Shown in pieces: positions 10,946 to 62,826 of a DNA stretch of 64,000 bases. Source of the stretch: Octopus bimaculoides (Eukaryota); contig NC_068983.1 of the NCBI RefSeq assembly GCF_001194135.2, forward strand, positions 37,867,532 to 37,931,531. Direction: 5' to 3'. The notes beneath the pieces were generated by a model. That model saw only the letters and a list, made by a program, of their open reading frames with translations. It was not told the DNA's origin and made no database searches. A program made the position numbers and the translations under genes. Every line of letters begins with the position of its first letter. Positions within the stretch are counted from its first letter, which is position 1.

Positions 10946-12266
10946 ATGGCAAGTGGTAGTGTCTCCAGTATGGAGAGCTACGCCAAGGCCACTGCGGTGA
11001 GGAAGCCAGTGCCGCTGGAAACCAAGTTAATCANNNNNNNNNNNNNNNNNNNNNNNNNNNNNNNNNNNNNNNNNNNNNNNNNNNNNNNNNNNNNNNNNNN
11101 NNNNNNNNNNNNNNNNNNNNNNNNNNNNNNNNNNNNNNNNNNNNNNNNNNNNNNNNNNNNNNNNNNNNNNNNNNNNNNNNNNNNNNNNNNNNNNNNNNNN
11201 NNNNNNNNNNNNNNNNNNNNNNNNNNNNNNNNNNNNNNNNNNNNNNNNNNNNNNNNNNNNNNNNNNNNNNNNNNNNNNNNNNNNNNNNNNNNNNNNNNNN
11301 NNNNNNNNNNNNNNNNNNNNNNNNNNNNNNNNNNNNNNNNNNNNNNNNNNNNNNNNNNNNTGAGGTTCGCCACTATAGAAGAGGCAACCAAGCATGCAAC
11401 CAACATACTAAGAAGTGAGAAAATAGCATTGCTACCAAGCTATAGAGGAAGAAGTGTGAAAATACGAATTCCCAGAGTTACACCAGATATTAAACCAGAG
11501 TGGTTGGTTGCAACAGTGCTGGCTGCAACCAAGGAGGAGCCGGAATTGGGACCAGTGGCGAAAACAAAAGTGTGCAAATGGTGGGGATTTGGACTCGAAA
11601 TGTGGCTTTTTGCCACATTCGAGGACAGAATTCCCTACCAGATAGAAGTGGAGGACGAGAAAACGTTAAATGTCGTAGTCGAGGGAAGAAAACCAAATTG
11701 TTATATATGCGGGGCGAGAGTTCATATGAAGACCAAATGCCCTCTATATGAGTTCACACAGCAAGAGAAAGCACAAGCAGAGGAGGAAAACATTGTAGAC
11801 CACACTGAGGAAATAAAAAGAGAGACAGAAGTGTGAAACAGAGAAGACAAAAGAGAAGAACGAAAATGGAGCTACTAACCCTAAACAGCGAAGGAAAAAT
11901 AAGTCAAAGGAACGGTCAACAGAAAACAAAAAAGTGATAAAAAGGCCAGAAACTAATAATGTACAAGAAGAGGAGGAGAGAACGGATAAAGATCTGAAAT
12001 ACAAGGGGCTTTTAATAAAGTACGAAAATTGCGAGCAGATGGAGAGAAAAGTCGAGAGGTTAGAAGAAATAATAAGAGTGAAAATGCCTGAGAAATGTAC
12101 TGAAAAATGCGTTTTGATACGTGAGGAAAGATGCTTCGAGTGCATAAAAGAACTTGGTGAAAATATAAAAACGAAACGGATATGGTTGGTGGAGACACCA
12201 CCCCCTAGAACTGATTATTTGCAGTTGTTAAGGACGGACGTAACAATGATTAATGGAAGAAAGTAA
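10946..12266 (+). pseudogene. LINE ORF1 (L1/Tx1-like gag-type protein with CCHC zinc knuckle), one frameshift near 11815-11836
   Basis: ORF 10946-11836 (with an N-gap) contains VKIRIPRVTPDIKPEWLV and VVVEGRKPNCYICGARVHMKTKC (CX2CX4HX4C). A K/E-rich reading frame continues in the +1 frame to 12266. Confidence 0.7.
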
Positions 12267-12621: not shown

Positions 12622-12790
12622 GTTCTGAGTTCAAATTTCGCTCAGGTCGACTTTGCCTTTCATCCTTTCGGGGTCGATTAAATAAGTACCAGTTACGCAC
12701 TGGGGTCGATGTAATCGCCTTAATCCCTTTGCCTGTCCTTGTTTGTCCCCTCTATGTTTAGCTCCTTGCGGGCAATAGAGAAATAATTAT
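12622..12790 (+). mobile_element. SINE-B 3' part (tail type 1)
   Basis: Ends TTAATCCCTTTGCCTGTCCTTGTTTGTCCCCTCTATGTTTAG...GCAATAGAGAAATA. Confidence 0.75.
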
Positions 12791-12794
12791 TTTA

Positions 12795-13010
12795 AGGCGG
12801 CGAGCTGGCAGAAACGTTAGCACTCCAGGCGAAATGCTTAGCGGTATTTCGTCTGTCTTTACGTTCTGAGTTCAAATTCTGCCGAGGTCGACTGTGCTTT
12901 TCATCCTTTCGGGGTCGATAAATTAAGTACCAGTTGCCTACTGAGTCGATCTAACCGACTGGCCCCCTTCCCCAAAATTTCGGGCCTTGTGCCTAGAGTA
13001 GAAAAGAATA
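12795..13010 (+). mobile_element. SINE-B full length (tail type 2)
   Basis: Runs from AAGGCGGCGAGCTGGCAGAAACG to CCTAGAGTAGAAAAGAATA. CpGs are largely intact. Confidence 0.8.
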
Positions 13011-22142: not shown

Positions 22143-22664
22143 CGTCTCTTTTGTTAGTTCTGGTCTTCCTTGTGTGATGCATATCATATACTGTAGTGAA
22201 ACATAATAACTAAAGAGGCCCTGTGTGGCTCGTGGGTGGGGGCGGGGTAAACTATGTGTGTGAGACTCCTTCCCCACTTCTACGTCACACCCTGCCTCTT
22301 AACTTTTATTTTCTTTGTTGTTGTTGTTGTTGTCACTGCTATTGTTAGCAATGTTTAATTTCCTTGTCTAACCTCTCTGGCTACCGCTTCGTCTTCGTCA
22401 CCCCCTCGTCGCTCCTCTTAGTCCCGATCTCACCCCACCCTCTTTCTTCTGGGGGTCCAACACTGTCACTATAGATATTATAGCCCTTCACCCCATCACA
22501 CCCACGTTAATACAAATGCGGGGGAGGGGAGGAAGAGGGAGAAAAGAGGATTACTTTTATCCCTATTTTCTTATTTCAAGGGAGCATCTTATTTTTCAAG
22601 AGTATCCATCCCTCCTGTATACACCCCCCACGCGCACTCCCACACGCACAAACGCACACACATC

Positions 22665-23107
22665 CTTTTCTACTCTAGGCTCAAGGCCTGAAATTTTTGG
22701 GGAGCGGCGTCAGTTGATTAGATCGACCCAGTACGCAACTGGTACTTAATTTATCGACCCTGAAAGGATGAAAGGCACAGTCGACCTCGGTGGAATTTGA
22801 ACTCAAAATGTAAAAACAGACGAAATGCCACTAAACATTTCACCCTGCGTGCTAACATTTCTGCCAGCTCGCTGTCCTTAGCAGTTATATATTCTTTTTC
22901 TACTCTAGGCACAAGGTTCGAAATTTTCAGGGAGGGACCAGTCGATTAGATTGACCCCAGTACGCAACTAGTACTTAATTTATTGACCCCAAAAGTATGA
23001 AAGGCAAAGTCAGCCTTGGCAGAATTTGAACTCAGAATGTAAAGACAGACAAAATACTACTAAGCATTTTGCCCGGTGTGCTAACGTTTCTGCCAGCTCG
23101 CCGCCCT
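22665..23107 (-). mobile_element. Two head-to-tail SINE-B copies (tail type 2)
   Basis: Copies at 22665-22880 and 22895-23107 in the same orientation. Confidence 0.8.
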
Positions 23108-23349: not shown

Positions 23350-23396
<47 letters not shown>

Positions 23397-23428
23397 TACA
23401 CACACACACACATATATACATACATCCG

Positions 23429-23470
<42 letters not shown>

Positions 23471-24824
23471 ATGGACTTTCAGTTTCTATCCACCAAATCC
23501 ACTTACAAGTCATTGCTCAGTCTGGGGACATAAGTAGAAGACACCCAAGGTGCCACACTGAGAGACTGAACTTGAAACTATGTGGTTGAGAAGCAAACTT
23601 CTTAACCACTCAGCCATGGTTGCACTACATATATATAATAAATAATATATAATATATATTTCGTTTTTGGATTTGGTTTGCAAGATTCTTTATGTGAGTT
23701 CGTGTGTTGAAGGTTATTCTGTTGTGTGTGGAGAGAGTCATTCTCTTTTAGTGCCTAGAAGAATAAAGAAAGAAACGAGTGGGAATTTTACCGGTGAATG
23801 TTTTAAACTATAAGGCACTAAAAGAGAATGACTCTCCCCAGACACAACAGAATATGCTTCAACACACACACACACACACACACACACATGCATATATGGG
23901 TACAGAATGTCACCACCGATGCAAATAGCATGAAATATGTAAACAAACAAGTTAAATACGTAAACAACGAGAAAAAAATGGTAAGCAGTATTTCATATAG
24001 ATATTTTTAGATATTTTTATGTAATTTTGTTAAATGTATCCCTTAAAATGAGATGTCAATGTTATTTTCATTTTTGCATAATTTAGACAGTTTATTCACT
24101 GCACCCTGTATAATCTCCCATATATATATATACCCCCATACATACACACAGTCTTGCCAAAACCATCGACCCACCACCATAGCTGGTGATATTACTTATA
24201 TTACCATTTCACAGAACCAATACTGCCATCACCATTACTATAACCACCTTCATCCACCTCATCATGTTTTCAACAAAACCCCCAGTTCTCCAGTACCATC
24301 ATCATCATCAACACAGTCTTCTACACCATCAGGTCAATATCACCATCACTGCCACCACCACCACCATCACAGCACTATTTTTTTCTACTCTAGGCACAAG
24401 GCCCGAAATTTTGGGGTGGGGAGGCCAGTTGATTAGATCGACCCTAGTATGCAACTGATACTTAATTTTTTGACTCTGAAAGGACAAAAGGCAAAGTCAA
24501 CCCTGGCAGAATTTGAACTCATATATGAAATATTGCTAAGCATTTCACCCGGCGTGCTAACGTTTCTACCAGTTTGCCGCCTCACCATCACAGCATTATT
24601 ACAATATGACAACGATAATGACCACCACCACCACCATGTCTTCAGTGTTACGAGGCACCGACACCACCAAGCGCAACTGATTCTCTACCATCACTGCCAC
24701 TGCCACCACTGTCACTACCACTGTCACCAGCACAGTATGGTAATGAGGTTGCATGTTATTCGTGTTTGTCTTTCCTAAAGGAGAATACTTATTACACACA
24801 GACACACACACATGCACATGTGCA

Positions 24825-32433: not shown

Positions 32434-32887
32434 ATCATCATCGTTTAACGTCCGCTTTCCATGCTAGCATGGGTTGGACGATTTGACTGAGGACTGGTGA
32501 AACCGGATGGCAACACCAGGCTCCAGTCTAATTTGGCAGAGTTTCTACAGCTGGATGCCCTTCCTAACGCCAACCACTCAGAGAGTGTAGTGGGTGCTTT
32601 TACGTGTCACCCGCATGAAAACGGCCACGCTCGAAATGGTGTCTTTTATGTGCCACCCGCACAAGCCAGTCCAGGGGCACTGACAACGATCTCTCTCGAA
32701 AATCCTACGGGAGCCAGTCAGGCGGTACTGGCAACGGCCACGCTCAAAATGGTGCATCTCATGTGCCACCCACACAAGAACCAGTCCAGGGGCACTGGCA
32801 ACGATCTTACTTGGCTTGCCGGGTCTTCTCACGCACAGCACATTTCCAAAGGTCTCGGTCAGTAGTTCCAAAGGTCTCGGTCAGTAG
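32434..32887 (-). mobile_element. 5'-truncated RTE-clade LINE (last codons, 3' UTR and (GAT)n tail)
   Basis: The minus frame reads TDRDLWKCAVREKTRQAK*, an RTE-type C-terminal DRxxW motif. The 3' UTR has internal tandem modules, and a 22-bp tandem duplication sits at the 5' junction. Confidence 0.7.
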
Positions 32888-33996: not shown

Positions 33997-34035
<39 letters not shown>

Positions 34036-35141
34036 TATATGCACACACGCACATATACACATATATATATACATATATACACACATATATATAAGGTACT
34101 CCGAAATGGGTCTTGGGGAGTAGTGTCCCTGCCTTCCTGAGCTAGTTTTCCACCACATTTCGTAAAAATCATGTTAGAGGCCTTGGTCTCGGGACCACTC
34201 ATGTCTAGAAACTGAGGTTGGGGGTAAGCAAGGGCATGCTCCCTGTAGAAAATCCAGCTATGAAAGAACTTCATGATAATAGCAAAGGAGAATGGGCTCC
34301 AGCCAGCCCAAAGGTTAGGGTGGGCTGCACCTACCCACCTGAAAAAGGAGGGTGCAAACCCTCCTCCTGGGTTGCACAAGCATGCCTCATATTGTTTAGA
34401 ATAAATCATGCATTATTTCATAGCTTTGAAATTTCACCGATGTGATTGTTTATTTTGAGAATGACATTGTAGGATAGGTATGAGAGGCTAAGTGGAGATG
34501 CGTGGTTTAGTGGTTAGGGTGTCAGCATCATGATCGTAAGATTGTGGTTTTGATTTCTGGACCGGGCAATGCGTTGTGTTCTTGAGCAAAACACTTCATT
34601 TCACATTGCTCCAGTCCACTCAGCTGGCAAAAATTAGTAACGCTGCGATGGACTGGCGTCCCATCCAGCTGGTGAACACATATGCCATTGAAACTGGGAA
34701 ACCAGGCCTATGAGCCTGGCTAGGCTTTAAAAGGGCGCATTTATTATTTATTTTATGAGAGGCTAAATCTGTCCAGATAAAATATTTGGGCCTGATATGG
34801 CGAGTTTAAATGCTAATGGGTTAATCATAGAGGCTCTAGGTTATTGAGAATTATCTTTCCATTATGTGTTCTCTATGTGATTGTACTTTTCTACTAAAAC
34901 TTCATCATCATCATCATCATTATTTTAACATTAACTTTTCCATGCTTACATTGGTTGGACTGAGTTTATTGTGGCAGATTTTCTATAGCTAGACACCCTT
35001 CTTGTCACCAATCCCTGGCTGTCTTTTATTCCCCATGGCCAGACATGTTTTTGCAGAAATGAACAACACTGCTTGTATGACAGTGACATTCATTTACAAC
35101 AATCACATGATGTCAAGACAAGGAAATACAAACATATGCGT

Positions 35142-35187
<46 letters not shown>

Positions 35188-36099
35188 TCGTTATCAGTCG
35201 TATTGGTTCAAAATAGCATTCTGTACATCATACTTAATGCAGATATACTACTGAAAGCCTGAAAACTGCAGTCTTGTGGAAGCATCTTGTAGTGACATAT
35301 TGTGTTAAAAAACACAGAAGTGTGTCAGTAGTAGACAAAAGTATCCAGCAGTATCTAGCAGAATTGCTAGATACATATTTCTGTTTCGTTGAGTATCATC
35401 AGTAGCAAGCATTCACCAACAACTGCATGCTAAGACAAATTTAGCCTCTACTGATGCAGAAAAATAGTGGCCTGGCTCTCTGTGGATTATGACAAAAAGT
35501 GTTCCAGTTGATATCAATCAAACAGCTTGCTCATGAAATTTAATGTAGAAGTGGTTGAGCACTCCACTGTAGTTCTCAGGGAGATTCAACATGACACAGA
35601 ATGTGACAAGGCTGGCTCTCTGAGTTACAAGTACTACTCATTTTTGCCAGCTGAATGGACTGGAACAACATGAAAGAAAAGTGTCTGGCTCAAGGACACA
35701 ATGCATCCTCAGGAATTGAACTCACTACATTATGATCATGGGTTGAATACCCTAACCACTTAGCCACATACACCTTCTCAGAAAAAGAGCAAAAATCTAA
35801 TTGACCAATCACTGGTGTTGCAGTTAATTTTTAAAATAATGGTTTCAAATTTTGCCTCAAGGGCAGCAATTTTGTGGAGGTGGGAATGAGTTGATTAGAT
35901 CAACCCCAGTATACAACTAGTACTTAACTTAATCCTGAAAGGATGAAAGGCAGAACTCAATGCGTAGCAACAGGCTTTTAAAATAATGTTGTTATTATTA
36001 AGCTTGTGTTTGGAACATAAATTAACATGAAATTTTGATGCAAGTGGTAAGTTTTAATTTAGATCATTTTAAAAAAGCATGTTTTGTATTATAGAACAA

Positions 36100-36494
36100 C
36101 AGTTAAGTCAAATAAGCAAATACAATCATTCATCAACAGATGCTTGCGTAGTATACTTAAAATCAGATGGCCTGAACACATAAGCAATATGGAGCTATGG
36201 CAAAGAATGAATCAAGTTCCGATTAGAGAGCAAATATTTAAGAAAAAGTGGAAGTGGATTGGTAGCACAATTAGAAAGGACACACCAAATGCAGCGAAAA
36301 GCGCTTTACAGTGGAATCCGGATGGATATAGAAAGAGGGGTAGGCCTGAGAACTCGTGGCGTAGATCAACACAAAAGGAACTAGAGAAAGGAGGACATTC
36401 ATGGCAGAGTATAAGTACAAAAGCGAGAAATTATGCAACATGGAATTCAATTATAAGTGGCCTATACTCCACGCTGGAGGGTTAAAGGCAAGAA
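36100..36494 (+). mobile_element. 5'-truncated RTE LINE encoding the ORF2 C-terminus, with a 14-bp TSD
   Basis: QSFINRCLRSILKIRWPEHISNMELW...KWKWIGSTIRK...ALQWNPDGYRKRGRP..SWRR...; TSD GTATTATAGAACAA at 36086-36099 and 36495-36508. Sits inside a piggyBac-like MITE ending AAAAGGG|TTAA at 36541. Confidence 0.9.
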
Positions 36495-37212: not shown

Positions 37213-38062
37213 TTATTTTTTTATATTCTGTATAAAGATTGAATCATTAACTCAACTGGATAATGACATTTTGATTCCAGTTACACTTGACAGCTCCATA
37301 CTGGTACTCATTGACTTTTCTGCAAACCCAAGTTCTTTATATACCACCACCACCACTACCGCCACCACCACCACCACCACCAATATGTAACCCTTTCCCT
37401 CTTCCATTCACTCCCCATTCTCAAGTACACACTTATTGAAATTTAAACTATTAGAAATGACACAAATTTACTGTGGATTTGATGTAATTCTTTTTAGCTT
37501 CCTTCCTTTTTTTTTTCTGTCTCTCTACCCTTCTTCTTCTTCTCTCATCTTGCTCTCTTCCTTCTCTCTCTCTTTTTTCCTCCCCCATTTCTCCCCCTCT
37601 TGCTCTCTCTCTCTCTCTTTCTCAATCTCTTCATATGCAAGAATTTATATGTGTACATGTCAAGTGATCATCAGAGCTTCGAGGATAACACTGAATGACA
37701 CTCAAACGCTACGGCCAAATACCAGGAAACCAAAAGGTACCAGAACTGCAAAAAAATTGTCCTTCTAAGTACTGCCCACATCTTAAGAAAAACATTGTCA
37801 ATAGGCAATGTAGTGTGTAGTAAGAAGTTTGCTTTCCAACTGCATGGTTCCGGGTTCAGACCCAGTGTGTGATACCTTGGGCAAGTGTCTTCTACTATAG
37901 CCCCAGGCTGACTAAAGCCTTGTGAGCAGATTTGGCAGATGGAAACTGAAAGAAGCCTATCATATTGGTGGCACTCTGCCGGTTGCGACAGCAAGGGTTC
38001 CTGTTGATCTTGGCAATGGAACAGCCTGCTCGTGAAATTAACGTTCAAGTGACTGAGAACTT

Positions 38063-40622: not shown

Positions 40623-41016
40623 TAGAGAGATAATATAACTAGATGGATGAAATTGCTTCTGAAATTGTAATTTTGTAAAAAATGAGTTGTGAAGCGAAAA
40701 CATTATAAGAGAGGAAAAGAGTATGAAAGTATGAAAACAGATCTTGAAGATAGATATGAATGGAACAGAAAGTGAAAATAAAAGACTGGAGTAAAAAAAT
40801 CAAGATATAGAGGAAGAAGAGGGGGATTAATTAGTTTGTAATTAATGTTAAGAGCAACTCCCATTTAGCTTCAGTTGATTTCATCTCACTCCGTTTCTCT
40901 GTTTTATTTTTTTACCAGCCTTTCCACTCAACACTGTTTCCATCCTCTACTCCCTCGCACACTTGTACTCTTCCTGTCACTCATACAGTGAATCGTATAG
41001 TGATTGTTTTAATTAT

Positions 41017-41203
41017 CCTTTCTGCTATAGACAGAAGGCCTGAAATTTGTGGGGAATGGCTAAGTCAATTACATCAACCCCAGTGTGTAACTGGTACTTA
41101 TTTTATCAACCTTGAAAGGATGAAAGGCAAAGTCGACCTCGGCGGAATTTGAACTCAGAATGTAAAAGACAAGCGCATTTCATCCAGTGTGCTAAAGATT
41201 CTG
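41017..41203 (-). mobile_element. SINE-B body and tail forming the 3' part of a 5S-tRNA-SINE chimera
   Basis: Minus strand GCTGGCAGAATC-TTAGCAC...GAGTTCAAATTCCGCCGAGGTCGAC...GGCCTTCTGTCTATAGCAGAAAGG. Lacks the first ~10 nt of the normal head. Confidence 0.8.
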
Positions 41204-41242
41204 CCAGCATGGGGCTCGAACTCATGACTGAGCTAGCCGGGC
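41204..41242 (-). pseudogene. Internally deleted tRNA-Lys(CTT) remnant
   Basis: GCCCGGCTAGCTCAGTC is the first 17 nt of metazoan tRNA-Lys(CTT). It joins ATGAGTTCGAGCCCCATGCTGG, which matches the T-arm region GTGGGTTCGAGCCCCACGTTGG at 18/22. The deletion lies between two GTC triplets. Confidence 0.75.
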
Positions 41243-41354
41243 TTACAGCACGTAGGTTTATCAAGCAGTCACCTATCTAAGTACTCACTAGGCTCAACGT
41301 TGCTTAACTTCGATGATTGGATGGGAACTGGTGTTTTCAACATGATATGGCTGT
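41241..41354 (-). pseudogene. 5S rRNA pseudogene, near full length (114 nt), CpG-decayed
   Basis: ACAGCCATATCATGTTGAAAACACCAGTTCCCATCCAATCATCGAAGTTAAGCAACGTTGAGCCTAGTGAGTACTTAGATAGGTGACTGCTTGATAAACCTACGTGCTGTAAGC is colinear with invertebrate 5S. Box A (AGTTAAGC) is intact and many of the changes are CpG transitions. Confidence 0.85.
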
Positions 41355-41645
41355 TTTAATTATGTCAGACAGGAAACGTACCATGCTTTCCCATTATCAG
41401 TAATTTGTTATTACTAAACAACAAAATGTTAATAACTAATTACTTACTGATCAATTAGAAGGCGAAAGCAACTAATTGTTGTTTGTAGATTGCTATACCA
41501 ATTGAATTTTTTAATTCACAACTGATATTATGACTTTATTAAAATTCGTTTTTTTTTTATTAACCAAAATTTCATGATCAAATAAAATTCGCATTGTTAG
41601 TCATCCATGTCTGTTATTAATATAATCATGCCAAAAATATACACA

Positions 41646-41826
41646 TAGTCGCAGGAGTGGCTGTGTGGTAAGAAGTTTGTTTCCCAACCACATAGTCCCG
41701 GGTTCAGTTCCAGTGCGTGGCACTTTGGGCAAATGTCTTCTATTATAGCTTCGGGCCGACCAAAACCTTGTGAGTGGATTTGGTAGACAGAAACTGAAAG
41801 AAGCCCATCATATATGTATGTGTGTG

Positions 41827-41874
<48 letters not shown>

Positions 41875-42170
41875 TACATATATATATATACACACACACA
41901 TATATATGTATGTATATATTTGTTATATGTATGTATATGTTTGTTATTTGTATGTATGTGTTTGTTATTTGTGTCTGTGTTTGTCCCCCCACCACTTGAA
42001 TGTTGGCGTGTTTACATCCTGCCACCTAGCAGTTCAGCAAAAAGAGAACGATAAGATAAGTACTAGGCTTACAAAGAATAAGTTTTGGGGGCGATTTGTT
42101 TGACTAAAAGTGGTGCTCCAGCATGGGCGCAGTCAAATGACTGAAACAAGTGAAAGAATAAAAGAATAAA
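41646..42170 (+). mobile_element. SINE-A full length with an expanded internal microsatellite
   Basis: Same head and 3' body as 1389-1800, with an internal TA/CA/TG tract of about 170 bp. Confidence 0.8.
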
Positions 42171-47619: not shown

Positions 47620-47870
47620 TTGAAAGAGGTAGGGATGAGTCGATTACATCGACCCTGGTGTGCAACTGGTACTTATTTTATTGACCCTGAAAGGATAAAA
47701 GGTAGAGTCAACCTTGGCGGAATTTGAACTCAGAACATAGTGACAGGCGAAATACTGTTAAGCATTTCACCCAGTGTGCTAACAATTCTGCCAGATCGCT
47801 GCCTTTTTGAATAATAATAATAATAATAATAAACAGCAACAACATCAGCAACAATCATAATTATTTCTCA

Positions 47871-47911
<41 letters not shown>

Positions 47912-48144
47912 AGAAGAAGAAGAAGAAGAATCCTTTCTGTTATAGGCACAAGGCCTGAAGTTTTGTGGGAGGGGGTTACATCGATTACATCGATCCTAGT
48001 GTGTAACTGGTACTTATTTATTTGATCCCGAAAGGATGACAGGCAAAGTCAACCTTGGCAGAATTTGAATTCAGAACGTAACAACAGACAAAATACTGTT
48101 AAGCATTTCGCCAGGCGTGCTAACGATTCTGCCATCTCGCTGCC

Positions 48145-48146
<2 letters not shown>
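47620..48146 (-). mobile_element. Two SINE-B copies separated by (AAT)/(ACT)/(AAG) microsatellites
   Basis: Copies at 47620-47805 and 47935-48146, followed by (AAT)n to about 48207. Confidence 0.75.
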
Positions 48147-49200: not shown

Positions 49201-49271
<71 letters not shown>

Positions 49272-50399
49272 TATGCGTGCGTGTGTGTGTGTCTGTGTGC
49301 ATTGATGGTAAATGAAAGCATGGGCATTCCTACAAATGGTATTTGTTTGTTTACAATTCTCTGCAAACTGTCCAGGTTTTTTGTTGTTAGATAGACTGGG
49401 AAAACTATTGTTTTGCTTGGAAGCAGACGAGGGTTGACGTGAGGAAGGGCATCTGATTGCAGAACAATCTGCCTGAATGAATATTAGGTTTTAAAATGTT
49501 GACAATGATGACCATTGAGAACATATCCTCTGTTGTAAAAAGCTGCGTATTCACAGATTTAATGAGACTGAGAAATACTTAGTTTGGTCTTCATTGATAG
49601 GAGTGAGGCAGGGAAATAAAATGGCATTCTCTCTCTCTCTCTCTCTCTCTTTCTCCCTCTCCCTTTTTCGCCCCCTCTCCCTTTTTCGCCCCCTCTCCCT
49701 TTTTTGCCCCTCTCCTTTTTTCACCCCCTCTCTCTCCCTATCTCTTTCTCTCTATCCCTATCTCTTTCTCCCTCTCCCTGTTCTCTCTCTCTCCCTCCCC
49801 TCTGCCTCCCCTCTGCCTCCTTCTCTCACTCTCTCCCTTTCTCCCCCTCTCCCCCTCTTCCCCTCTTTCAATCTACCTGTCACTGTCAATCGCACAGCAT
49901 ATTTTATCTTGTACTTGTTTCAGTCATTAAGACTGCAGCCATTTTGGGGCACCAATTTGAAGAGTTTAGTTGGAGGAATCAATTCTGGTTGGTTTGAGAA
50001 TGTAAAGACTGTTCTTCCACAGACATATACCGAACAGCATACACACCATATAAAAAAAAACACATACCCATATACATAGATGTACATTGGCGCACACACA
50101 TACTCCACTCACACATATGCACACACACTTTGATGCGCACACACTTTGATGCGCGCGCACACACACACACACACACACACATTATGACATGATACAAATC
50201 ATTTTATATTGTCACTTAAGTATTGTTCTTTACTGCTATCACCCGCTTCTGGTGAAGAGCAACTAAATATTTTGTGTGTGTGGTTTGGTTGATAAACCAG
50301 AGTGGTACTTGGTACTTGAGTGGCTCTTTGTGAGATAAGACAGAGTAGAATCTATTAGAATTTGAGCTGAAAATGTAGAGGGATGTAACTAAATACAGC

Positions 50400-58465: not shown

Positions 58466-58501
58466 ACGATATATGTATGTATATACATGCACATATATAT
58501 G

Positions 58502-58550
<49 letters not shown>

Positions 58551-59174
58551 GCACACATATACATGTATATGTTATATGTGTGTATAAGAGTTATACTCTG
58601 AGGAAAGGCCACAAAGTGGTTTTCTTTCATGCTAGAAATGGGAGTTAAATCCCAAAGTATGAAAAATCTATTCTTATTTTGGCATACTAAATATAGGCAG
58701 GCAGGACTATTTGAGAGATTTCAAAAAAAATTAGTCATTCCTGTACTTTGCAGTTTCGCCCTTAAGGATTAAATACACTAATTAATAAATTAATCAATGC
58801 ATTAAACTATCTATGGCTCGGAACCATGTGGTTGGAAGCAAGCGTCTTACCACACAACCACTCATGCGCCTATATATTCATGATGGGCTTCTTTCAGTTT
58901 CCATCTACCAAATCCACTCATAAAGCTTTGGGTGGCCTGAGGTCATGGTAGAAGACACCCAAGGTACCAAGCTGTGGGGCTGAACCTAAGACTACATGGT
59001 TGGGAAACAAACTTCTTACCACACAGCCATGTCTGAACCTTAGAAGCTGCACCTAACCCCTAACCACACACACACACAACACAATGGGTTTCTTTCAGTT
59101 TCTGCCTACCAAATCTACTCACAAGGCCTTGGTCAGCCCAAGGCTATAGTAGGAGATACTGGTGCTATGCAGAT

Positions 59175-59245: not shown

Positions 59246-59668
59246 CATCATCATCATCATCATCGTTTAACGTCCGCTTTCCATGCTAGCATGGGTTGGA
59301 CGATTTGACTGAGGACTGGTGAAACCGGATGGCAACACCAGGCTCCAGTCTGATTTGGCAGAGTTTCTACAGCTGGATGCCCTTCCTAATGCCAACCACT
59401 CAGAGAGTGTAGTGGGTGCTTTTACGTGTCACCCGCACGAAAACGGCCACGCTCGAAATGGTGTCTTTTATGTGCTACCCGCACAAGCCAGTCCAGGGGC
59501 ACTGGCAACGATCTCGCTCGAAAATCCTACAGGAGCCAGTCAGGCGGTACTGGCAACGGCCACGCTCAAAATGGTGCATCTCATGTGCCACCCGCACAAG
59601 AACCAGTCCAGGGGCACTGGCAACGATCTTACTTGGCTTGCCGGGTCTTCTCACGCACAGCACATTTC
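59246..59668 (-). mobile_element. 5'-truncated RTE-clade LINE 3' end (young subfamily)
   Basis: About 8 substitutions over about 410 nt relative to 32434-32860 (counted by eye), nearly all at CpG. Confidence 0.75.
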
Positions 59669-60117
59669 CATGTATGTAGCTATGTGATTAGTGTGTTGAA
59701 CTCATGATCATAAGGGTGTAGATTCAATTCCCGGACTGGGCGTTGTGGTGTGTCCAAGAATCAAACAAGGAATGAAACTGAAGTAAGATGACATGATGTG
59801 CCTTGAGAAAGGTACTTCATTTTATATTACTCAGTTCTATTCTTGAGTACTGAAAATGAGTACTAGTTGTCTGCTAGTGCAGCTCTCTCTCTTTCTTTCA
59901 TTCTCCCCTTCTATCCCTCTGTCTCCCACTATCTCCTCCCTCAGGCTGTCACAAGCTCAATGTTGCACTGGATTATAGGTGGGAGAGCTGAAAAGGTATC
60001 CGTGTCTGTTTATAATTAGAGAGGTACCTCCAACAATTAAAGAAAATGTGGTATAAATTACCATCTCGTCCTCACCAGCAATTGGAACCCTTGTCGCATT
60101 AATATCACTAAAAGATG

Positions 60118-62427: not shown

Positions 62428-62826
62428 AAGCGTAGGAGTGGCTGTGTGGTAAGTAGCCTGCTTACCAACCACATGATTCTGGGTTCAGTCCCACTGTGTG
62501 GCACCTTGGGCAAGTGTCTTCTACTATAGCCTCGGGCCGACCAAAGCTTTGTAAGTGGATTTGGTAGACGGAAATTGAAAAAGCCCGTCGTATATATGTA
62601 TATATTTATTTATGTATGTATGTGTGTCTATGTTTGTCCCCCCCCAACATCGCTTGACAACCGATGCTGGTGTGTTTACATCCCCGTAATTTAGCGGTTC
62701 AACAAAAGAGGCCAATAGAATAAGTACTAGGCTTACAAAGAATAAGTCCTGGGCTCGATTTGCTCGACTAAAGGTGGTGCTCCAGCATGGCCACAGTCAA
62801 ATGACTGAAACAAGTAAAAGCGTAAA
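62428..62826 (+). mobile_element. SINE-A full length
   Basis: Colinear with 1389-1800, with a short internal microsatellite. Confidence 0.8.

Follow-up and report, generated by a model that had tools for sequence, protein, structure and literature searches.

Short interspersed elements (SINEs) in which transfer RNA (tRNA) and 5S ribosomal RNA (rRNA) sequences are combined include MEG-TR, a tRNA/5S hybrid SINE of fruit bats. In SINEs of the Deu superfamily, such as AmnSINE1 and OS-SINE1, a 5S sequence is fused 5' of a tRNA head (Nishihara et al. 2006, as summarized in PMC4758252), some of the tRNA region is missing, and transcription has presumably passed to the 5S promoter, according to the same summary (PMC4758252). 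A 5S head placed on the 3' part of a tRNA-derived SINE residing in the same genome is also known from the HaSE3/HaSE1 pair of Helicoverpa, the CoeSINE5/CoeSINE4 pair of the coelacanth and SINE3 of zebrafish (PMC5786205, PMC3272025). A further kind of composite is formed by the chimeric retrogenes that arise through template switching, namely those of the U6-L1 type (Buzdin et al. 2003) and the WEIRD/Mg-SINE/MGL element (PMC2104539), in which RNA copies are directly fused in one orientation. Here we describe a composite of 5S rRNA, tRNA-Lys and SINE sequences found in a stretch of 64,000 nt of the Octopus bimaculoides genome (contig NC_068983.1, positions 37,867,532 to 37,931,531), all of which was analyzed and which is referred to below as the window. 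We consider this element, with a probability of about 0.6, to be a decayed member of a family of 5S-headed octopus SINEs that is listed by automated annotation and otherwise undescribed.

In the order of its modules (5S, tRNA remnant, SINE body and tail) the composite resembles the Deu-SINEs as they are summarized in PMC4758252. It differs from those described there in having two tRNA-related modules after the 5S part, a gutted tRNA-Lys and the SINE's own head, and in having a mollusc as host. Pairs of the HaSE3 or CoeSINE5 type replace the tRNA head, whereas the composite keeps almost the whole tRNA-SINE, from position 11 onwards, together with the tRNA-Lys remnant. As in 5S-headed SINEs (SINE3) generally, the 5S head is at the 5' end and in the same orientation as the remainder, and the 12-nt flanking duplication is typical of copies of the SINE family, here called SINE-B, that makes up the 3' part. 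Like the template-switch chimeras, the composite begins with a small RNA and finishes with a retroelement, and one target site duplication (TSD) encloses all of its parts; a double switch has been documented among such chimeras (PMC2104539). Those chimeras, however, are unique, non-propagating products of L1 or MGL, while the composite may have propagated, has a SINE as its 3' partner and consists entirely of RNAs of the RNA polymerase III (Pol III) type. The composite works like a template-switch chimeric retro-copy, and structurally the closest counterparts are the 5S-plus-tRNA heads of AmnSINE1 and OS-SINE1, as far as the summary of these describes them.

A table of 5S-derived SINEs in a 2024 review lists fish, insects and mammals and no molluscs (PMC10946416), so a characterized octopus family would be new in detail, not in kind. 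Both 5S-headed SINEs and tripartite template-switch chimeras are already known (PMC5786205, PMC4758252, PMC2104539), and the composite is accordingly a neat illustration of a familiar kind with little in it that is unexpected.

Architecture of the composite element

The element occupies positions 41354..41015 of the minus strand (about 340 bp) and comprises three modules in the same orientation: from 5' to 3', a copy of 5S rRNA, a tRNA-Lys(CTT) whose middle is missing, and a SINE-B that is almost complete. Read on the minus strand from 41363 to 41005, the sequence passes from ATAATTAAAACA into the 5S copy, GCCCGGCTAGCTCAGTC, ATGAGTTCGAGCCCCATGCTGG and the SINE body and tail, and then into ATAATTAAAACA again (41016-41005). 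These 359 bp are contiguous with zero N, and the modules adjoin directly, any spacer, tail or poly(A) being absent between them. The features, in order along the minus strand, are as follows.

41352..41363, no strand assigned: TSD copy upstream of the element, ATAATTAAAACA on the minus strand; its terminal ACA may be 5S positions 5-7
41241..41354, minus strand: 5S rRNA-derived module, 114 nt, about 5S positions 5-118; RF00001 75.4 bits, E = 3.8e-14
41226..41242, minus strand: tRNA-Lys(CTT) positions 1-17, GCCCGGCTAGCTCAGTC; 17/17 identity to human tRNA-Lys(CTT)
41204..41225, minus strand: 3' part of tRNA-Lys(CTT), ATGAGTTCGAGCCCCATGCTGG, about positions 49-70, with the T arm and the 3' side of the acceptor stem; 18/22 identity
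41015..41208, minus strand: copy of SINE-B that spans 11-217 of the consensus built from window copies, with 78.7% identity
41005..41016, no strand assigned: TSD copy downstream of the element; its leading AT may be the final 2 nt of the SINE-B tail (...GAAAGGAT)

The locus shows directly which modules are present and in what order, how they are joined, that one duplication surrounds them, and that the copy has decayed. The 5S rRNA, tRNA-Lys, SINE-B and flanking repeat of the original prediction are all present at the positions given for them, and its reading of three Pol III-type modules in one orientation is supported. The element is a real, old and decayed retroposon that entered the genome in one event.

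Origin of the three modules

The 5S module was matched by the Rfam covariance model RF00001 at 41358..41240 on the minus strand (75.4 bits, the gathering threshold being 38; E = 3.8e-14; model positions 1-120), and the 114 nt of minus-strand 5S rRNA that had been predicted were thereby confirmed by a covariance search. This was the sole Rfam family above its gathering threshold in the 64-kb window, and a permissive Rfam scan of the 64 kb detected no second 5S at E <= 1. True 5S homology extends over 114 nt from ACAGCC (41354) to GTAAGC (41241), that is from ACAGCCATATC to GCTGTAAGC; the first 4 nt of 5S are absent, and the covariance model aligns flanking sequence there. The module stops at the mature 5S 3' end, and the sequence has no T-run terminator after it. 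The internal promoter region of 5S, with box A, the intermediate element (IE) and box C, is present. Helix I and about 7 further base pairs are broken in the Rfam alignment and, with the first 4 nt and the T-run absent as well, the module is best regarded as a decayed 5S retro-copy and not as a gene. A functional 5S rRNA gene was considered and rejected on account of the absent 5' end and terminator, the broken helices and the lack of a tandem array in the window.

For the middle module, the human tRNA-Lys(CTT) sequence given in PMC8216282 served as the reference. The first piece, GCCCGGCTAGCTCAGTC (41242-41226), is identical to the 5' end of this tRNA at 17 of 17 positions, and the second, ATGAGTTCGAGCCCCATGCTGG (41225-41204), agrees with positions 49-70 at 18 of 22, two of the four mismatches being CpG-decay transitions. 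Their joint gapped local alignment scored 50.2, compared with a maximum of 25.6 in 2000 shuffles; the best tRNA-Lys(CTT) score elsewhere in the window was 26, and comparison tRNAs (initiator Met, elongator Met and Asp) scored 12-23 against the same stretch. The tRNA-derived sequence sets in, without a leader, at nucleotide 1 of the mature molecule, lacks positions ~18-48 with the deleted anticodon arm, and has lost GCG-CCA at its 3' end. As the anticodon is gone, the assignment to CTT is based on acceptor and T-arm sequence. ARAGORN reported zero tRNA genes in the whole window, and the Rfam tRNA model did not match the tRNA-Lys stretch even at E <= 10; both negatives are expected where positions ~18-48 are missing. 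The predicted match to tRNA-Lys(CTT) therefore stands by sequence comparison (50.2 against at most 25.6 in shuffles) and fails by covariance model and tRNA finder.

The prediction had also placed a single deletion between two GTC triplets. An alternative alignment with two deletions, in which CATGA from the anticodon stem is retained, is just as good and is the one that the aligner prefers. The missing middle could be due to a jump across the structured core during reverse transcription, or to a later deletion. According to Ohshima and Okada (1994), the 'OK' SINE of octopus derives from tRNA-Lys, and the tRNA-Lys piece could in principle stem from the RNA of an OK-type SINE rather than from a tRNA.

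The 3' module (41208..41015, from GCTGGCAGAATC to CAGAAAGGAT) aligns at 78.7% identity to positions 11-217 of a SINE-B consensus that was built from nine window copies. With 29 blastn matches to this consensus, SINE-B is the commonest repeat of the window, and the SINE body and tail that had been proposed for the element belong to it. Other near full-length copies show 77% to 92% identity to the consensus. The copy in the composite is 5'-truncated by about 10 nt and carries a 12-nt internal deletion that is absent from 16 of the 16 other head-bearing copies. Among the 17 head-bearing SINE-B copies of the window one is composite, and the other 16 all begin with (A)AGGCGGCGAGCTGGCAGAA right after unrelated flanking sequence. 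An octopus OR-type SINE has been placed in the CORE superfamily (PMC4758252); SINE-B scored 20 against an approximate MIR consensus, no higher than shuffled sequences (mean 19.9).

SINE-B copies often form head-to-tail pairs with a spacer of ~20-120 bp or a microsatellite between them (22662-23105, 47632-48146 and 12622-13009). The adjacent copies are 22662-22872 with 22893-23105, 47632-47805 with 47930-48146, and 12622-12728 with 12794-13009. This suggests that SINE-B prefers insertion beside existing copies or their simple-repeat tails.

A single flanking duplication

The sequence TGTTTTAATTAT is repeated exactly, over 12 nt, at 41005-41016 and 41352-41363. Repeats of at least 12 nt between two 30-nt segments 347 nt apart occur at 0.27% of window positions and are mostly microsatellites. 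Among the four boundaries of the element (5S start, 5S/tRNA, tRNA/SINE and SINE end) only the outer pair shares a repeat; for any other pair, such as those enclosing the SINE alone or the 5S-tRNA part alone, the longest common string is at most 5 nt. Of the repeat, 2 nt on the SINE side (AT) and 3 nt on the 5S side (ACA) could belong to the element itself, and the length of the duplication is accordingly 7-12 nt. Ordinary SINE-B copies carry duplications of 8-15 nt, for instance 13 nt (TGCTGTGATGGTG) around 24381-24582, with others of 9 and about 15 nt.

A 12-bp TSD around the whole element and partly overlapping its ends had been proposed, and the exact repeat, at a chance frequency of 0.27% in the window, agrees with that proposal. 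The lone outer duplication, the direct junctions and the mature 5S 3' and tRNA 5' ends together indicate that the element entered as one unit, a part of the original prediction that is upheld and to which the similar duplications of SINE-B copies also conform.

Proposed formation by template switching

Both inner junctions show microhomology: the 5S and tRNA modules overlap by GC, and the tRNA and SINE modules have GCTGG in common (41208-41204), as G(C/T)TGG. The junctions coincide with landmarks of the RNAs (the mature 5S 3' end without a U-run, and nucleotide 1 of the tRNA), which argues for joining at the level of RNA or cDNA and not for a DNA rearrangement. From this anatomy, the simplest course of events that can be proposed is the following. 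The reverse transcriptase of a long interspersed element (LINE) would have been primed on the SINE tail by target-primed reverse transcription. It would then have switched off the SINE RNA, about 10 nt before its 5' end, onto a site near the 3' end of tRNA-Lys (at G(C/T)TGG), and a second time, at the mature 5' end of the tRNA, onto the mature 3' end of 5S rRNA (at GC). Finally, the cDNA would have been attached to the target with the first 4 nt of 5S left uncopied, at a point where ACA is common to both. Every jump would have landed at 2-5 nt of microhomology.

Template switching is what we infer from the anatomy of the element (the Pol III read-through and the family membership considered below are inferences as well), and the putative path agrees with the documented behavior of LINE enzymes. 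As in the template-switch chimeric retrogenes defined in PMC2104539, the fusion is direct, the orientation is one, the retroelement is 3' and there is one outer duplication. The view preferred here is that the switches would have occurred once, in a progenitor that then multiplied. We see roughly even chances that the element represents an undescribed octopod SINE family whose head was built by two successive template switches, with the gutted tRNA-Lys as the visible intermediate.

Transcription, decay and age

No run of four T (T4) is present on the sense strand at either junction; the single T4 of the element's sense strand, at 41167-41164, corresponds to T3 in the SINE consensus. Pol III that initiates at the internal promoter of the 5S head could therefore transcribe the entire composite, together with the SINE tail that the LINE enzyme recognizes. 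Since the 5S head has no terminator, such a read-through transcript is possible, and by this means a progenitor could have multiplied. At the time of insertion the composite would have held the 5S internal control region, the B box of the tRNA remnant, and the A-like and B-like boxes of the SINE; the 'stacked promoters' of the original prediction may thus be a fair description of its ancestry, as judged from the sequence. The A-like and B boxes of the tRNA remnant are only ~10 nt apart, a spacing too close for TFIIIC.

The present copy is almost certainly dead, in view of its box C substitutions and a divergence of ~21%. The SINE part has a Jukes-Cantor (JC) distance of ~0.25 from the consensus, which is a crude measure of age because the consensus comprises nine copies and the distance is inflated by CpG decay. 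In O. vulgaris, a JC distance of 0.2 has been equated with ~56 million years (My), and the split between O. vulgaris and O. bimaculoides has been placed at 13-33 My (PMC13282606). On that scale the insertion would be older than the split, and a filled orthologous site is predicted in both species. The window has a CpG observed/expected ratio of 0.54 and a G+C content of 37%, and the depletion of CpG is consistent with methylation-driven decay, which would explain most substitutions in the three modules.

Family member or unique chimera

The original prediction allowed for two origins, a product of reverse transcription with several switches or a composite 5S/tRNA SINE family. The odds of sampling favor a family over a unique event. 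By our arithmetic, the probability of meeting a unique element in a given 64-kb window of a genome of ~2.5 Gb is ~2.5e-5, while for a family of 1e3-3e4 copies it is 0.03-0.5. Suitable families appear in published annotations. The curated repeat annotation of O. vulgaris contains a SINE/5S class with 4 consensus families and 9,831,953 bp (PMC13282606, Table S1), corresponding to ~0.35% of the genome, a density at which 64 kb would contain ~0.7 elements as long as this one. For O. bimaculoides, an independent annotation gives SINE/5S and SINE/5S-Core-RTE at 0.030% and 0.021% of classified copies (PMC8967140, Table S2). If these percentages refer to the 3.64 million elements in Table S3, each class would number around a thousand copies in order of magnitude. 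In the giant squid genome there are ~24,000 5S-derived loci, which the authors judged likely to be SINEs (PMC6962438). The octopus SINE/5S and SINE/5S-Core-RTE classes are like the composite in their label as 5S-class SINEs, and their abundance fits one element per 64 kb.

Several points weigh against membership in such a family. Only labels and totals of the octopus SINE/5S classes have been published, so their identity with the composite is inferential, and the labels are the output of an automated classifier and may include 5S pseudogenes or arrays of 5S rRNA genes. The 'recently active' 5S class of O. vulgaris consists of 7 insertions that cover 42 kb (PMC13282606) and looks like arrays. 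Within the window there is no second copy with these junctions, and none of the other 16 head-bearing SINE-B copies has 5S or tRNA-Lys sequence upstream. The box C region of the 5S module has several substitutions in this copy, and the deletion of 12 nt from the SINE part, like the loss of the tRNA middle, may be peculiar to it. With about 1 composite expected per 1000 SINE copies, the lack of a second one in the window is weak evidence.

Database searches were of little consequence for this question. The 25-mer across the 5S/tRNA junction had 0 matches in collections of metagenome and viral contigs, which are without detectable octopus DNA: a control 40-mer from SINE-B, with 7 matches in the window, had 0 in genome_contigs and viral_contigs. 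A gapped pattern with a 5S box followed by a SINE-B box had one match, on a bacterial-looking contig (L001), and was dismissed as chance. A six-frame junction query against a set of 5.8 billion proteins that is nearly without octopus repeat open reading frames (ORFs) gave no match at E <= 10; a control fragment of LINE reverse transcriptase found one gastropod protein only, so the junction negative carries no weight. The same is true of the lack of an exact-protein record for the ORF across the junctions (41106-41264, minus strand) and for a neighboring 142-aa ORF.

The foremost alternative is a one-off tripartite retro-copy, in which the double switch occurred during this very insertion and the product never multiplied, leaving a dead-on-arrival pseudogene like the mammalian U6-L1 chimeras or the WEIRD/Mg-SINE/MGL element of Magnaporthe. 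The orientation, the microhomology at the junctions, the small-RNA 3' end, the 5'-truncated 3' partner and the one duplication fit this origin equally well, and there is a tripartite precedent, the Magnaporthe chimera, which is flanked by a 14-bp repeat. In the paper describing it, two earlier tripartite elements from human are cited and two from mammals are newly reported (PMC2104539). The absence of a second copy from the window, a tRNA remnant that is useless as a promoter and a 12-nt SINE deletion confined to this copy also speak for it. On the other hand, a unique element should almost never appear in one 64-kb window, an objection that is weaker only if chimeras arise very often here or if the window was selected as unusual. 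Families of 5S-class SINEs moreover occur in de novo repeat libraries of octopus genomes, and the composite has what propagation needs, a terminator-less 5S head and an intact SINE tail. Overall we regard the one-off origin as possible yet rather unlikely. All explanations other than a family member or a one-off chimera are, even when taken together, improbable.

One of these is that independent events occurred in sequence, a 5S-tRNA piece and a SINE-B landing side by side or being joined by a rearrangement at the DNA level. Neighboring SINE-B insertions are indeed common in the window, but such neighbors are spaced, and downstream copies that keep their 5' end (22872, 48146 and 12794) have complete or nearly complete heads; in the composite, by contrast, tRNA and SINE abut and the first ~10 nt of the SINE are missing. 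The SINE alone and the 5S-tRNA part alone are flanked by common strings of at most 5 nt, compared with the 12 nt found outside, and the 5S-tRNA piece lacks a 3' tail by which it could have recruited a LINE enzyme. With no inner repeats, no spacer and no tail on the 5S-tRNA part, and unlike the spaced SINE-B pairs, the locus makes sequential insertion very improbable.

Least probable of all is that the structure is an artefact of assembly, or that a true 5S gene chances to lie beside repeats: the assembly is a draft with 2062 N in several gaps, one of them ~1 kb away (39.7-40.1 kb), but the 359 bp are contiguous without N, three microhomology joins with a matching outer duplication are unlike a mis-join, and the 5S copy has neither 5' end nor terminator, intact helices or a tandem array.

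Other repeats and features in the window

About 250 bp from the composite, at 41640-41815 on the plus strand, lies a copy of a second abundant tRNA-like SINE family (GTCGCAGGAGTGGCTGTGTGGTAAGAAG...CACTTTGGGCAAATGTCTTC...), followed by a TA/CA microsatellite. Some 18 further copies of this family are present, e.g. at 1386-1557, 37814-37965, 62431-62601 and 58872-59029. Aligned to an approximate MIR core, it gave no significant score. The two SINE families together account for about 47 matches in the 64 kb.

The only LINE fragment of the window is 5'-truncated and located at 36060-36485 on the plus strand, where it encodes the last ~133 aa of a reverse transcriptase ORF (…RWPEHISNMELWQR…GRPENSWRR…). 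Its only database relative is a hypothetical protein of Elysia chlorotica (DUF6451) with 48% identity. The 3' region of the fragment (36.06-36.49 kb) has no similarity to the SINE-B tail, and this LINE is therefore probably not the partner of SINE-B.

Two nearly identical 122-aa ORFs (MKPDGNTRLQS…LENPTGASQAVLATATLKMVHLMCHPHKNQSRGTGNDLTWLAGSSHAQHIS) are located 27 kb apart on the plus strand, at 32497-32865 and 59319-59687, and are either copies of an unnamed repeat or the result of a local duplication. A 296-aa ORF at 10946-11836 (plus strand), with an N gap inside, contains a CCHC-like zinc-knuckle motif (CYICGARVHMKTKCP) and looks like a fragment of a retroelement gag/ORF1. The 84 sub-threshold Rfam matches (models of mir-297, mir-3149, mir-466, mir-1277 and small nucleolar RNAs) all lie on TA/CA/TG microsatellites and were rejected as composition artefacts, not microRNA genes. 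Examples of these look-alikes from the permissive scan at E <= 1 are the following.

41810-41878: microsatellite
34002-34072: microsatellite
23396-23469: microsatellite
49223-49302: microsatellite
58499-58585: microsatellite

Significance

Understanding of SINE biogenesis is unchanged under either outcome. For the annotation of repeats, copies of this kind are not to be called 5S or tRNA genes, and they may serve as phylogenetic insertion markers in octopods. If the element is a one-off chimera, the LINE machinery that moves octopus SINEs would be one that makes double jumps between Pol III RNAs, like L1 and MGL. If it belongs to a family, 5S-headed elements of the SINE3 type would be extended to molluscs, where this family would be the first characterized. 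SINEs are the dominant repeat class in the octopus genome, and such a family would show with unusual clarity how template switching replaces the head of a SINE, a type 1 Pol III promoter having been grafted onto a type 2 SINE.

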